Shown here in pieces: positions 50,174-53,837 of a DNA stretch of 64,000 nt (position 1 is its first letter; every line of letters begins with the position of its first letter). The position numbers and the translations under genes are program-made. The notes below the pieces were generated by a model, which had not been told where the DNA came from, did not search any database, and was given only the letters and a program-made list of their open reading frames with translations. This DNA comes from Pelomyxa schiedti (taxonomy: Eukaryota > Protista > Evosea), in the NCBI GenBank assembly GCA_020536535.1, contig JAHLWZ010000832.1, positions 1 to 64,000 of the forward strand, written 5' to 3'.

Positions 50174-50179
50174 AAAAAA
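50174..50179 (-). terminator. RNA polymerase III terminator (T6) downstream of tRNA-Gln
   Basis: Minus strand reads GGGGCCA-TTAA-TTTTTT. Confidence 0.7.
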
Positions 50180-50183
50180 TTAA

Positions 50184-50255
50184 TGGCCCCGCTCAGAATC
50201 GAACTGAGATCAAGAGAGCCAAAATCTCCCATACTAACCATTATACTACGGAGGT
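50184..50255 (-). tRNA. trnQ-TTG: tRNA-Gln(TTG), downstream copy; positions 1-2 are AC instead of GG (two acceptor-stem mismatches)
   Basis: ACCTCCG TA GTAT AATGGTTA GTAT G GGAGA TT-TTG-GC TCTCT TGAT CTCAG TTCGATT CTGAG CGGGGCC A folds as a cloverleaf with intact A and B boxes. Confidence 0.9.
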
Positions 50256-51423
50256 TAAGCCCACACAAACGGCAGGCGTGTGTTGAAATTATTACTGAAA
50301 AACAGTGAAGCGGGGGGGCTTCTAGTGTACTGTGGATGGCGTGGATGTTTGTGCGGTGTGCTTGACTGCTACGCGGTGGTTGTGTGGTTATGGTGAGGCT
50401 GCTACATTATGTGTGTTACTGATCAAAGGCGGTTATGCGATGGTCCGGGTCTTCTCCCCGGTGTTTATGGAGGGTGGTAGATGTGATTGGGAGGGATCAC
50501 AGCTTCCAAGTCAATCTTCGATTGAGTTGGAAGACCAACGTTCCTCCTTAATTCGAGCAGGGCCAAATTTTGGGGCAGGGTTGACACGTGGTAGTTGTAT
50601 AAGCCTACCAGATTCCTAGCGGCGGATTTAGCGGAGTTCGGGGTGTTAGGTGTGACATTCAGAGTCTTCAGGGAGTTTAACCGGAGCTCCTTGCGGATTG
50701 CAGCGTTATGGCGGCATGTGTTGAGGATGTGCTTGACCGATTCCGGGGAATTGCAGCCGTGCCGGCATGTTGAGGCGATGTGGAGGATGTGGGACATGCG
50801 GTTATTCAGGGGCTTCATGCCGGTTGCAATTTGGAGAGCGTGGTTCCGCAGGGTTGGAGGGATTCCCTTGGTGTTGAGGTTCTTGACCAGGTTGATCCAG
50901 TGAGCCGCTGTTGGTTTCTCTGTCATTGTGGTCCGAAGCTTGTGATGCAGGGATTTTCCCGGGCGTTCGTCCAGGATTGCCCTGTAAATGTCAGTGGGGT
51001 TCCTGAGAGTCGGTGGAATCTTCTCATTGAACGTGTGGATTAACTGCAGTGGGGAGGTAGGTAAGACCTTCTTCGGGTCTGTGCGGTTTGGATGCCTGAG
51101 GGCCGACACGGCGGTGGCAACATTCCACCAAGCCATGTCCAGCAGGGGGGTGGCAAAGCCACCCCCAGGGAGGGAATGGAATGACGACATTTGTAGATAA
51201 GATAGAGTAGAGGGTTGAGGATAGAATAGAATTGTTGTTTGTCAAGTTTTTAATGCTTGGTAAACTGGTTGTTGGTTTGTCTTTGGCTGTTTTAAGGCTG
51301 TCGGACATTGTTGTTTCCCAGGTCGATTTGGGGAAGGTGGTCACGCCCGGGATCGATCCCACAACCTCTCAGTTTTCGCGATTTCAGACGAACGCCTTAA
51401 ACCGCTAAACAAAAAGGTCTCCC
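50254..51423 (-). mobile_element. Non-autonomous non-LTR retroelement (tRNA-like head + L1/Tx1-type ORF2 3' remnant) inserted inside tRNA-Gln
   Basis: Flanked by identical 20-mers 50234-50253 and 51424-51443 from within the tRNA; ORF 50465-51190 has zf-RVT-like IPPTLRNHALQIATGMKPLNNR..CRHGCNSPESVKHILNTC; tRNA-like head at 51338-51415. Confidence 0.82.
50465..51190 (-). CDS. Truncated retrotransposon ORF2 C-terminus (zf-RVT/CCHC); no RT catalytic core or endonuclease
   Basis: 241-codon intronless ATG ORF with GGGFATP motif and CxxxC..ES..HILNTC. Confidence 0.7.
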   Translation of the reverse strand: MSSFHSLPGGGFATPLLDMAWWNVATAVSALRHPNRTDPKKVLPTSPLQLIHTFNEKIPPTLRNPTDIYRAILDERPGKSLHHKLRTTMTEKPTAAHWINLVKNLNTKGIPPTLRNHALQIATGMKPLNNRMSHILHIASTCRHGCNSPESVKHILNTCRHNAAIRKELRLNSLKTLNVTPNTPNSAKSAARNLVGLYNYHVSTLPQNLALLELRRNVGLPTQSKIDLEAVIPPNHIYHPP

Positions 51424-51445
51424 CTAACCATTATACTACGGAGCC
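51424..51445 (-). pseudogene. Original 5' end (nt 1-22) of the tRNA-Gln gene, displaced by the insertion; contains the upstream target-site duplication copy
   Basis: GGCTCCGTAGTATAATGGTTAG; GGCTCCG pairs fully with the acceptor 3' strand CGGGGCC at 50185-50191. Confidence 0.88.
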
Positions 51446-51748
51446 TTCGTATTTCGGTGTGAAGTGAACAGAGTTCTTGCTGCTGCTGCCAGGCTTTTTT
51501 CCAGGAAAGAAAAAAGAGGGTCCTGACCTTTATGTAGTTGTGCCGGGGGCGGGGTGTGTTGGTGTGTCATTCCGAGGCCATTCCAGTGTTCCGCTTCGCC
51601 CCGAACGGTGGCTGTTTTCTCTCAAATGTCAATTGTACGTATTTGCGAATATTAGAATAAAAAAAAAAAGAAAAAGGAAGAAGAAGACGAAGAAGAGCAG
51701 GTGCGTAAACTTACCTCGTAATCGTCGATACGCACGCAGGCAAACAAA

Positions 51749-53837
51749 ATGAGCAGCCACCTCTCCGCCACGCACCAGTCTCCCTCATGCGAAGCCGACA
51801 TGGAGCGCGAGTTGTCGGGTCTCCCCCAAGACATACGGGCTATACTCATGGCCGCACCATACGGCCGAGACGCCTGAGGTGCTCCCCTCACCACCCAGCC
51901 AAACAGAGCCAGGAGAGGCAAGCGCGCGCACAAATCATCATCATCAGCAACCACCGCTGCAGCGACAACGACTATGATCTCCGCCTCGGGTTCGTCAGCA
52001 TCACCAAACACTCCTAACCACGCCAGTATCCTCACAATTGCTTCATCCACCAACACCCGCTCCTCTTCCTCTTCCTCTTCCTCTTCCTCTTCCTCGTCCT
52101 CGTCCTCGTCCTCGTCCTCATCCACAGTCACCTCTTCCACCCCAAGTGCAGTGACAGAGAGCCAGCGCAAGCCCACCGTGAAGCAGCCCAATCCCCCAAA
52201 ACCCAAAAGGGGGAAGGTATCTGCAGAGGTGGAGCCACGCAAACCACTCGTTGTTGTTGGTGGTCTCACTCCAACCGCTGAAGGCGGACAAGTAGCAGAA
52301 ACAGAAACAAATGTGCCGAGCATCACATCCTCTTCTTCAACACAGTCAGAGGATCCTCAATTGAAGAAAGCCTCACCAACAATGCCTCCGAAAATAAATC
52401 TGGGGTTGTGTCCGACACCACAATAGCAACCTCAGCCAATAATAACAGTGCCGAGACAAGAATGACTTCCACTTCCACAGGAGTGACGACTCTGGTGGGA
52501 CACGTAACCACCGCCACCAAGGCTCCTTCTGGAAACTTCCAAGTGACAAAGTCCGTGCAGCCGCACATTGAAGGAATTTACTTGAGAGAGCAGATGCTGA
52601 GCCTCCTCGCGGGAACTCTTCCCAGGAAGTGCATCTGCCCTGCGAGTTCTTACGCCGGCCTCCGAGAAGAGGCTGGTCATCGTGCTCCGCACCGGAACCA
52701 GGCAAGGAAGAGTAGAGGAGCGAGCCCTGAAGCTCGGACTCTGGCAGGATGCCAGGTGTCATATCCTCGGAATTGGAAGTCAAGCCTGTTTTGCATCTCA
52801 TTGAAGAGTCCTGGTTGGTAACCTGGGCAGGAGAGGATCACTATGTCGTTCACGAGAAGAAGGGTCGAGGGTTCCCTTCCATTTTCAAGCTTCGCGACGT
52901 TCAAAGCACAGGAGATTCAAGGGTCTTGCTGGAGTGCAGCAAGCCTCCCCCTCGAGTATTTCACTGCAGGACAAACAGCCACTGGCACCTTTATTACTGC
53001 GGGGGTGAACCAGAATTTTACATTGAGCCTGCCCTGCTTCCCACACCGCCACAAATCGGAAGTTCCTCCTTGTCCTCTTCCTCCTCCCTGTTGAAAGTTC
53101 AACAAGAAGACCTGGGCCTGCTGGAAGGGCACGTAATTTCTTTGGTCGCTCTGAGCAATCGGGAGCAAAACGTGGCGCTCCTCGTTTCCCGGAAGCTGAA
53201 GCCGACAATCTCACCGACAGAGCACCAAATAATATTCTGGAACGTAAAGGAGTCCACGGAGAGCAGGCGATTCCACGAGATCGAGAGGTGGCTGGTGACC
53301 GGGATAGAGGCCCTGGAAGGTGAGACCATTTTGAGGGTGTTTGTGATAAGGTCTGGCTACTATGATGACAAGCTGGACGACGACGCAGTCGTCGTTGCAC
53401 TGTCATCTACGGGCAGAGTATACGTCATCAAGAGGAAGAATCCAGCAGCACCTCACCTCGTCCAAAGTGCTGGGTGTGAAGTCAGGAACTTGTTCGCAAT
53501 TGGGAATGGAACAAAGTTCTGCATCACATATGACGGAAGATATGAAACACGAGACGTGAACACGCCAGAGGACGTGCTGATGACCGTCGACATCACGGGG
53601 TTCAAGTCGGTGGAATGGGAGACAATCACTGGCCTCATGCTGGCCATGTCAGAAAAGAAGGTGGACAACACAGAGAGTGACAACAGCAACAAGAAGTCTA
53701 CCACAATCCAATACATTGACGTGAGGAACGTGGAGGACAACAGATCGCTGTTCAGAGTTCCTTTGAGAACACATAGGGGCACAGTTACCTCCCTCGTCAA
53801 GAGTTTCTCGTTCAGTACACACCATCACGCCCCGTAA
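51749..53837 (+). pseudogene. Disrupted intronless gene: Ser-rich N-terminus, REQMLSLLAGTLPR motif, beta-propeller-like C-terminus
   Basis: ATG 51749 frame broken by TGA 51875-51877; apparent frame switches near 52403, 52660 and 52742 link ORFs 51974, 52408 and 52749. Confidence 0.6.

Follow-up and report, generated by a model that had tools for sequence, protein, structure and literature searches.

A non-LTR retrotransposon copy within a tRNA-Gln gene of Pelomyxa schiedti and a family whose 3′ ends adjoin the starts of tRNA genes

Retrotransposons at tRNA genes

In compact genomes, tRNA genes are the textbook 'safe haven' of mobile elements, and the targeting of such genes has arisen repeatedly, in yeasts and in dictyostelids. 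For the family described here the closest precedent is NLTR-A of Dictyostelium purpureum, whose copies lie 2-6 bp ahead of tRNA nt 1 (Spaller et al. 2016, PMC5006619; review PMC5911963). Both are amoebozoan non-LTR elements that occur within a few bases of the mature 5′ end at many different tRNA genes; NLTR-A has two ORFs, with APE and RT in ORF2, and the Pelomyxa family likewise has APE and RT. Compared by published description, NLTR-A has a dictyostelid host, stays upstream of the coding sequence and has an RNase H following the RT, whereas the Pelomyxa family has a host from the Archamoebae, is inserted mostly inside the tRNA gene (nt 2/3 or 3/4) but also at -6 to -8, and has an ORF2 that lacks an RNase H match and ends ~85 aa past a CCHC motif.

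TRE5 and TRE3 of Dictyostelium are also amoebozoan non-LTR elements with an ORF1 and an ORF2 (APE, RT and zinc finger), and use any tRNA gene by position, TRE5 40-54 bp upstream and TRE3 40-150 bp downstream, with the ORF1 protein of TRE5-A contacting TFIIIB (PMC5911963). By published description, the difference is one of placement and termini: the TRE elements lie further from the tRNA gene and end in oligo(A), whereas in the Pelomyxa family, positioned at -8 to +4, the 3′ end is defined and there is no A-tail. Yeast Ty3 and the dictyostelid DGLT-A resemble the Pelomyxa family in using a narrow interval at or close to the site where Pol III begins to transcribe a tRNA gene, but have LTRs, an integrase and 5-bp duplications, where the Pelomyxa family would use APE-primed reverse transcription and has duplications of 16-27 bp. 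The sequence-specific non-LTR elements R1, R2, Mutsu, Keno and Dewa and the DNA transposon Dada also use multicopy RNA genes; Dada goes into tRNA genes and Dewa into a tRNA-Leu spacer (PMC3706591). Each of these recognizes a single DNA sequence, with a single target type for each family, whereas the Pelomyxa family is found at unrelated genes in a common position, and Dada is a DDE transposon with terminal inverted repeats and 6-7 bp duplications, in contrast to an RT/APE element with duplications of 16-27 bp.

Targeting of tRNA genes is therefore known, but this position and this lineage were not found in the literature searched, which contained no report of such a family from Archamoebae, in agreement with the original prediction. 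The Pelomyxa family would be an independent case from a distant amoebozoan branch, and its range of insertion sites, which overlaps the coding sequence, is the narrowest among the non-LTR elements in the literature surveyed.

An insertion within a tRNA-Gln gene

The window analysed is a 64,000-bp stretch of P. schiedti DNA from the contig designated C832; other C-numbers designate other contigs of the genome. On its minus strand tRNA nt 1-22 are followed by a 1170-bp element, by tRNA nt 3-73 and by a T6 run, the arrangement that had led to the prediction of a non-LTR retroelement within a tRNA-Gln gene. The features are as follows.

51424..51445, minus strand: orphan 5′ piece of tRNA-Gln(TTG), nt 1-22 (sequence read)
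51443-51424, minus strand: target-site duplication, upstream copy, 20 nt with the A box (sequence read)
50254..51423, minus strand: non-LTR retrotransposon copy, read as internally deleted, 1170 bp (sequence read)
51161..51423, minus strand: 5′ module, 5′ UTR plus ~10 first codons (MSSFHSLPGG), shared by genomic copies
50465..51190, minus strand: fusion ORF, 241 aa, 10 N-terminal codons plus the last ~230 ORF2 codons, in frame
50714..50767, minus strand: C-x3-C-x7-H-x4-C zinc-knuckle motif, ORF2 C-terminus
50254..50464, minus strand: 3′ UTR; small hairpin (GCC...GGC) at its terminus, five bases from the end
50234..50253, minus strand: target-site duplication, downstream 20-bp copy, tRNA nt 3-22 (sequence read)
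50184..50253, minus strand: tRNA-Gln(TTG) nt 3-73, A and B boxes kept, G1 and G2 missing (ARAGORN, Rfam)
50174..50179, minus strand: T6 run, Pol III terminator-like, five bases past the tRNA (sequence read)

The orphan fragment is letter for letter the start (nt 1-22) of the tRNA-Gln that is intact on C1718, and the two 20-bp copies of tRNA nt 3-22 (51443-51424 and 50253-50234) match exactly, as had been claimed. The element starts GGGAGACC... and ends ...GGGCTTAAC in the direction of the tRNA, so that its predicted orientation and lack of poly(A) are both borne out, and the two termini recur in other copies in the genome. A T5 run is present inside the 5′ module (element nt 9-13). ARAGORN places a minus-strand tRNA-Gln(ttg) at 50184-50255. 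Rfam gives this tRNA 46.8 bits, and the only pairs that it marks as non-standard are those of the acceptor stem at 1-2 / 71-72; here the final two bases of the element, AC, occupy the place of G1 and G2, resulting in mismatches at pairs 1:72 and 2:71.

Judged by its sequence, the window copy is an internal-deletion derivative rather than a plain 5′-truncated copy, and is non-autonomous. At 51161/51160 the 263-nt 5′ module meets the ~230 final codons of ORF2, which the 3′ UTR follows; the RT domain, present in longer family copies, is missing, and from GGFATPLL onward the window ORF is the C-terminus of a 576-aa RT-bearing ORF on C659. The C659 copy is 5′-truncated, and the copies on C258 and C821 are internally deleted like that in the window. 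The same 5′ start is common to seven genomic copies, most of them 79-100% identical to the whole or a part of element nt 1-263, with only ~21 first nt shared by the seventh (C5317). Because it begins seven copies at differing targets, this 5′ head is the normal 5′ end of the family. The head was also considered as a tRNA mosaic or tRNA-like promoter and rejected as either, with no tRNA recognized by Rfam at E up to 1 and an unremarkable fold (z = -1.2).

The 5′ junction is bridged by Logan contigs spanning 51395-51817 (X1) and 51341-51817 (X2), from two runs of one sample. None of the Logan contigs listed bridges the internal joint at 51161/51160 or the 3′ junction, where 51 bases have no listed piece because the contigs break there and within the multicopy tRNA-Gln gene. 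Together with an assembly that is broken up at the repeat, where C530, C258 and C620 contain N gaps, this is what would be expected if amplified single-cell DNA or the assembler had fused a repeat to a tRNA gene and the window insertion were unreal. Such an artefact is extremely improbable: a chimera would not yield an exact 20-bp duplication from tRNA nt 3 to 22, a like anatomy is present at more than 10 further loci with different tRNAs and unique flanks, and the 5′ junction is spanned in both runs. The upstream flank has no second high-identity copy in the genome that could represent the empty allele (best 72%), and no joint in the Logan contigs bypasses the element, although as rare variants are dropped from these contigs a missing empty site is no proof of its absence.

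Coding capacity and classification

Pfam recognizes RVT_1 (6e-32) in the 576-aa ORF of the C659 copy. In a sister copy on C900, a 364-aa ORF1 precedes an ORF2 that contains Exo_endo_phos (2.4e-9) and the beginning of the RT, and this ORF2 is collinear with a 1420-aa APE+RT protein encoded by a transcript of Mastigella eilhardi, in which Exo_endo_phos (4.9e-8) is collinear with the RT; the RTs are 44% identical. No LTR or TIR was seen in the family copies, and by its encoded domains the family is an APE-type non-LTR (LINE-like) retrotransposon. APE together with RT is seen in the C900 sister copy and the Mastigella transcript. No intact full-length copy of the window's own subfamily is assembled, and an APE is found in sister copies only, since the one on C806, which has two stops, runs off the end of its contig.

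The zf-RVT match of the window ORF is weak, its 13.6 bits (E 0.11) falling short of the cut-off, 27.5; the 576-aa ORF has none at E up to 0.01, nor has the Mastigella protein at E up to 0.001. The L1/Tx1-type label originally given to this C-terminus is thus tentative. The 576-aa ORF, which stops ~85 aa past the CCHC motif, also has no RNase_H match. In a PDB search, LINE-1 ORF2p and R2 were the best matches, with equal scores. In a tree composed of the best database hits, the archamoebal sequences form a clade (100/99) that is sister to APE-RT elements, mostly with RNase H, and is set apart from the main zf-RVT-bearing group. The database hits outside Archamoebae are metagenomic proteins, and there was no Dictyostelium protein among the hits with names looked up (word-filtered searches; 10 of the 150 best representatives). 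The potential to form the 3′ hairpin is kept in most copies across subfamilies, with an invariant stem that, as it does not vary, provides no evidence of covariation.

Element ends at the starts of tRNA genes

The terminal 13-mer of the element occurs 17 times in the 52-Mb genome, versus 0 for the reversed control. At least 11 of ~20 distinct 3′ junctions adjoin the start of a tRNA gene; with a chance expectation of p ~2.5e-4 per junction, this corresponds, as a rough estimate, to P ~4e-35, and the arrangement is not due to chance. At every target junction it is the 3′ end of the element that faces the gene, in gene orientation. The junctions span about -8 to +4 of the mature 5′ end, nt 2/3 being the commonest; at least 8 are interior (nt 2/3 or 3/4) and never deeper than nt 3/4, and three, at Glu, Ile and the Gln on C1718, are upstream at about -6 to -8, close to the NLTR-A position. 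The targets are as follows.

Gln: 3′ junctions on C832, C1380, C791 (twice), C3784 and C1718
Pro(AGG): C597; the interrupted copy begins CC, an intact twin 800 bp away begins GG
Ser(TGA): 3′ junction on C2312
Met-like: C3920; Rfam alignment only from model position 4
Glu: 3′ junction on C821
Ile(TAT)-like: C478; our reading, Leu(aag) according to ARAGORN
Multicopy ~105-nt gene: at least 10 copies at ~730-bp tandem spacing, with B-box-like and T-run features
5′ flanks matching the start of a gene: Gln nt 1-22 (C832), Gln nt 1-21 (C258), class-II tRNA nt 1-27 (C4844), Glu to nt 10 (C821), multicopy gene (C819)

On C791, one Gln gene has been hit in tandem, and at the multicopy gene the element adjoins the first conserved base. 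The interrupted Gln gene of C1380 departs from the canonical sequence at nt 23-25. All copies end ...GGGCTTAAC plus 0-5 non-A bases, and an oligo(A) tail is absent; the extra bases present in some copies between the 3′ end and the gene (C, CC, CCC, CCCC, TCCTC or TT) make the nick position uncertain by up to 5 bp. As the upstream flank holds the first 10-27 nt of the gene, the duplications are 16-27 bp; complete copies with both ends and a duplication are those in the window (20 bp) and on C821 (16 bp).

There is no recognizable tRNA beside the 3′ ends on C620 and C198, or in the flank shared by C1517, C711 and C3542. On C1183, C806, C312 and, at 17.5 kb, C258, the flanks show nothing beyond B-box/T-run features or a decayed tRNA, with no convincing fold and no tRNA call by Rfam; these were classed as tRNA-like and left out of the tRNA junction count. 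The C1183/C806 flank is present in 4 copies in the genome. The C900-type sister elements, which end ...GGCTTACC, have no tRNA at their 3′ end, and tRNA targeting is therefore not general to related subfamilies.

Target choice and integration

With a probability of roughly 0.8, the window insertion is a non-autonomous, internally deleted copy of an APE-type family that uses target-primed reverse transcription to insert at the 5′ edge of tRNA-type genes transcribed by Pol III. The endonuclease would nick the antisense strand first, at a position set by the start of the gene and not by its sequence; reverse transcription would begin exactly at the end of the 3′ UTR, sometimes past a few extra bases, and not in a poly(A), and the second nick would be made 16-27 bp deeper in the gene. 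With its precise 3′ end lacking poly(A) and its predicted fixed first nick, the family is a candidate model for position-guided target-primed reverse transcription.

It had been proposed that the family is sequence-specific; one target sequence per family is the habit of the Tx1 group. An endonuclease that reads a specific tRNA-Gln DNA sequence, as in R1, R2 and the Tx1 group, with the 20-bp duplication restoring a working tRNA, would explain why Gln is the commonest target (~6 of the 11 tRNA junctions) and why the Gln junctions are reproducibly at nt 2/3 or 3/4. However, targets of the same subfamilies include Pro, Ser, Met, Glu and Ile genes as well as a multicopy gene that is not a tRNA gene, no motif is common to the seven initial bases of the targets, nt 1-2 are lost and old interrupted Gln copies have decayed, all of which makes such sequence recognition very improbable. 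A family that targets tRNA genes is therefore retained from the original prediction, with at least six tRNA species plus one non-tRNA gene as targets in place of Gln alone.

The position of insertion is probably set by the Pol III machinery, through a protein contact made at the transcription start with TFIIIB, TFIIIC or Pol III itself. Such a contact would be the likeliest guide because the targets share only the features of type-2 Pol III genes, and both the diversity of targets and the position of insertion point to tethering, for which TRE5-A of Dictyostelium and Ty3 of yeast provide precedents (PMC5911963, PMC5006619). Alternatively, an element protein might bind the A box (tRNA nt 8-19), or some other conserved feature, and nick at a fixed distance upstream without Pol III machinery. 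The A box is common to all of the tRNA targets, an A-box-like stretch is also present in the multicopy non-tRNA target, the principal junction (nt 2/3) precedes the A box by 5-6 bp, and the minor class (-6 to -8) lies roughly another helical turn away. Pfam, however, recognizes no DNA-binding domain in ORF1 or ORF2, and in all of the experimentally studied cases cited in the reviews consulted tRNA-gene targeting is via Pol III factors (PMC5911963), so that direct A-box binding seems unlikely. The family sharpens the question of what the element reads, be it the transcription start, the open complex or the A box.

Effects on the target genes and activity

Insertion at nt 2/3 removes the first two bases of the gene, which is probably inactivated, whereas insertion at -6 to -8 leaves the gene intact. 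The proposal that the duplication rebuilds the tRNA has been abandoned: interior insertions delete nt 1-2, the downstream copy in the window begins AC rather than GG, and A and B boxes and acceptor arms have decayed in the older interrupted Gln genes of C791 and C3784. As the range of insertion sites extends into the coding sequence, the supposedly 'safe' target is damaged in about two thirds of cases, which sharpens the question of how much tRNA-gene damage hosts tolerate.

In amoebozoans, Thg1-like 3′-5′ polymerases rebuild exactly the first three bases of a tRNA, as exemplified by the 5′ editing of mitochondrial tRNAs in Acanthamoeba and Dictyostelium. Interior junctions of the family never go deeper than nt 3/4. 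There are two Thg1-family loci in the P. schiedti genome, and conceivably such an enzyme might repair interrupted cytosolic tRNAs at the RNA level, the element exploiting 5′ repair by the host. This is decidedly unlikely but, if true, the interrupted genes would remain functional.

With regard to activity, a 1511-nt contig from single-cell RNA-seq covers the end of ORF2, with unique flanks at zero depth, and three copies at separate loci are 99.7-100% identical across 910 bp.

A tRNA-Gln gene split by a retroelement

The tRNA-Gln(TTG) gene of the window is split by a 1170-bp element, with nt 1-22 upstream (nt 1 being the mature tRNA 5′ end), nt 3-73 downstream and 20 bp duplicated. Reading of the sequence, with ARAGORN and Rfam, gave the order tRNA nt 1-22, 1170-bp element, tRNA from nt 3 on and T6 exactly as in the original prediction.

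Features of the split gene
51445-51424, minus, GG and first copy of the 20-mer (sequence read)
51423-50254, minus, element, 1170 bp (sequence read)
50253-50234, minus, second copy of the 20-mer, then remaining tRNA to 50184 (sequence read)
50179-50174, minus, T6 run (sequence read)
50184-50255, minus, tRNA-Gln(ttg) (ARAGORN)

The Rfam tRNA model scores 46.8 bits at 50184-50255, with non-standard pairs at 1:72 and 2:71 only. The gene is read as split because GGCTCCG, the partner required by its 3′ acceptor strand, is supplied by the upstream fragment and is also found in the intact tRNA-Gln of C1718 (C-numbers are contigs of this genome, C832 that of the window; L-numbers are stretches taken from them).

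Locations of family copies

A whole-genome search (52.4 Mb, 5337 contigs) with the 1170-bp element as query, and with its ends, as had been proposed, identified further copies that share its termini. The genome contains the terminal 13-mer GTGTGGGCTTAAC 17 times and its reversed control 0 times; longer terminal patterns yield nine 3′ and seven 5′ ends for the subfamily of the window copy. This repeat interrupts the assembly, in which no full-length copy of the subfamily is intact, and family copy numbers are therefore lower bounds. Gaps of 100 bp (N) lie inside or directly after family copies at C530:68000-76000 (L042) and on C258 (L014) and C620 (L035). For the 3′ junctions, the bases after ...TTAAC were read from the flanks and tRNA identities taken from ARAGORN and Rfam calls.

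Genes at 3′ junctions (contig; gene; extra bases after TTAAC; position at which the gene resumes)
C832, C1380; Gln; none; nt 3
C791, first element; Gln; none; nt 4
C791, second element, and C3784; decayed Gln copies; none; nt 3
C597; Pro(AGG); CC; nt 3
C2312; Ser(TGA); CCCT; nt 3
C3920; Met-like; TT; nt 4
C821; Glu(TTC); TCCTC; -6
C478; Ile(TAT)-like, intron-bearing, in our reading (ARAGORN, Leu(aag)); TCCTC; about -7
C1718; Gln; CCC; about -8

In every gene-adjacent case the element has the orientation of the gene. The probability of at least 11 hits among twenty junctions by chance is about 4e-35, assuming 2160 tRNA genes (a rough first-look candidate count) and a 12-bp oriented window. Targeting of tRNA genes, as originally predicted, is thus borne out by copies at tRNA gene starts, but is not confined to Gln, extending to Pro, Ser, Met-like, Glu and Ile-like genes and to a ~105-nt gene. 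Similarly, insertion into the tRNA interior holds for the nt 2/3 and 3/4 junctions but not for C821, C478 and C1718, at -6 to about -8.

The interrupted tRNA-Pro(AGG) gene of C597 has CC where its intact twin, 800 bp away, begins GG. These two genes (L015:262-332 and 1070-1140) differ solely at nt 1-2, CC being in the copy that abuts the element, and with a tRNA-Thr between them they form a small tRNA cluster. The Rfam alignment of the Met-like tRNA of C3920 begins only at model position 4. Four 3′ flanks (C1183, C806, C312 and C258 at 17.5 kb) either show nothing beyond a B-box-like motif with a T run or seem decayed. No recognisable Pol III-type gene is present at the 3′ flanks on C620 and C198 or in the common flank of C1517, C711 and C3542, and one 3′ end on C711 passes directly into another element.

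On C659, CCCCA separates the element from the first conserved base of the ~105-nt gene, of which there are at least 10 copies, in part tandem at ~730-bp spacing (C659:2814-2918, which is L003:2416-2520; C807:129048-130585; C1224:11184-12021; C727; C1012). Stretches resembling the A and B boxes and a T6 run are present in this gene; an Rfam search recognised in it no tRNA or other family, and it may encode a Pol III small RNA of an unknown kind. The family has struck it twice, at the C659 3′ junction and in the 5′ flank of the C819 copy.

In the flanks listed for 5′ ends, the sequence preceding GGGAGACC..., the 5′ start of the element, is the start of a gene; the 5′ flanks of C530 and C4458 carry no gene assignment.

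Genes at 5′ flanks
C832, Gln nt 1-22
C258, Gln nt 1-21
C4844, class-II tRNA nt 1-27
C821, C5317, Glu, -6 to +10
C819, start of the multicopy ~105-nt gene

Both ends lie on one contig in two copies, and their duplications, 20 bp in the window and 16 bp on C821, agree with the ~20 bp predicted, but the position is not constant, varying from about -8 to nt 4. On C791, tRNA-Gln nt 4-21 lie between two tandem elements, so that one gene was hit repeatedly.

Structure and expression of the element

The distribution of genome matches divides the element into two modules, nt 1-263, which recurs on C4458, C258, C4844, C530, C821 and C819, and nt 261-1170, which recurs on C1183 and C659 (99.7-100% identity) and C806 (95%). 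The second module ends a 576-aa ORF on C659, in which an RVT_1 domain is recognised (6e-32), and on C806 the frame extends upstream through the pre-RT region up to the contig start. The 241-aa ORF of the window has ten 5′-module codons (MSSFHSLPGG) and then the last ~230 codons of ORF2. As the 5′-module codons run into the end of ORF2, the window copy is an internal-deletion derivative with its joint at 51161/51160; differing deletions are present in copies on C258, C4458 and C821 (the 999-bp copy).

In a sister copy on C900, a 364-aa ORF1 precedes an ORF2 in which Exo_endo_phos and the first part of RT are recognised. This ORF2 and a 1420-aa APE+RT protein of the Mastigella eilhardi transcriptome, itself 44% identical to the Pelomyxa RT, are collinear. 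The family thus belongs to the APE-type non-LTR retrotransposons; it has ORF1 and ORF2 (APE, RT, CCHC knuckle), and its 3′ end is defined and carries no poly(A).

A small hairpin, GCC(C)...(G)GGC, five bases before the 3′ end (window 50254-50300, minus strand), is retained by most subfamilies, and sister subfamilies (copies in L019, L053 and L072) have AATAAA ~16-22 nt before the 3′ end. An A-tail is absent from every copy, including those with AATAAA. The short non-A tails between element end and target (C, CC, CCC, CCCC, TCCTC, TT) may be bases added without a template or a short remnant of the parent copy's target.

Near-identical family copies occur at different loci. The family is transcribed, as a 1511-nt single-cell RNA-seq contig covers 50302-51160 and then continues into full ORF2, not the window's joint; the window copy itself has no such support, with zero RNA-seq depth on its unique flanks. 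Read support came from Logan contigs of one study. These bridge the 5′ junction in two runs of one sample, and none of those listed bridges the 3′ junction or the deletion joint. There was no sign of an empty allele, either as an element-skipping joint among the Logan contigs or as an empty-site haplotig in the assembly.

Proposed mechanism

The junction is nearly fixed at the element 3′ end and variable at the 5′ end, as target-primed reverse transcription predicts. Judging from this anatomy, the first nick would be in the antisense strand at the 5′ edge of the gene, priming would occur at the terminal bases of the 3′ UTR, near the conserved hairpin, and the second nick would fall 16-27 bp further into the gene. 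The first seven target bases have no common motif and the targets share a type-2 Pol III gene layout, which favours the Pol III machinery as the guide, acting where transcription starts, as documented for TRE5-A of dictyostelids (ORF1 with TFIIIB) and for Ty3 (PMC5911963). Junctions at nt 2/3 and those at -6 to -8 form two classes about one helical turn apart, a spacing that, in these few cases, would fit a tethered nuclease. The main alternative to guidance by the Pol III machinery is that the A box is read directly.

Comparison with known elements

Dictyostelid non-LTR elements target tRNA genes (Spaller et al. 2016, PMC5006619). NLTR-A of D. purpureum lies 2-6 bp ahead of tRNA nt 1, termed an as-yet unobserved specificity, and no TRE-like elements were reported for Physarum, Acanthamoeba or Protostelium (PMC5006619). 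Elements of the TRE5-A type are stated not to insert within the target itself, and Dewa is stated to target a tRNA-Leu spacer (Kojima and Jurka 2013, PMC3706591); a 2018 review lists no element within mature coding sequence (PMC5911963). The Pelomyxa family differs from NLTR-A in its mostly interior position, lack of RNase H and host lineage, and from TRE elements in position and lack of an A-tail. A literature search turned up no publication on Pelomyxa retrotransposons. In a tree of best database hits, without named references, the Pelomyxa and Mastigella clade is well supported (100/99), has unnamed APE-RT elements, most with RNase H, as neighbours and lies outside the main zf-RVT-bearing group; the originally proposed L1/Tx1 label is thus a putative one. 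The feature and the family are real and follow a known principle, in which a non-LTR retrotransposon targets Pol III genes by position; relative to the papers searched, the position and the lineage are new.

Fate of interrupted tRNA genes

The downstream tRNA-Gln copy retains the A and B boxes, as predicted. The related claim that the host gene is largely preserved is not supported, with G1 and G2 replaced by the last bases of the element and two acceptor mismatches resulting (Rfam). Where insertions are older and diverged (C791, C3784), the D arm and B box of the downstream Gln gene are no longer intact, so that interrupted genes do not seem to be preserved; genes hit at -6 to -8 stay whole. 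Repair of the mismatched 5′ end, to which two loci matching the Thg1 family (tRNA 3′-5′ nucleotidyl transferase; C894:51634-52215 and C171:20048-20188) are the sole pointers here, would be improbable.

In single-cell RNA-seq run X3, tRNA-Gln contigs end in CC and an extended A stretch that follow the discriminator base, which suggests mature CCA-ended tRNA, A-tailed or oligo(dT)-captured, from reads not assignable to the window copy (50184-50253). The ~300 bp upstream of the window tRNA-Gln (51446-51760, minus strand) are a dispersed repeat, present at ~70-77% identity on roughly 12 other contigs. This repeat accompanies several tRNA-Gln genes, including that of C1718, and a conserved upstream block seems to move together with tRNA-Gln genes.
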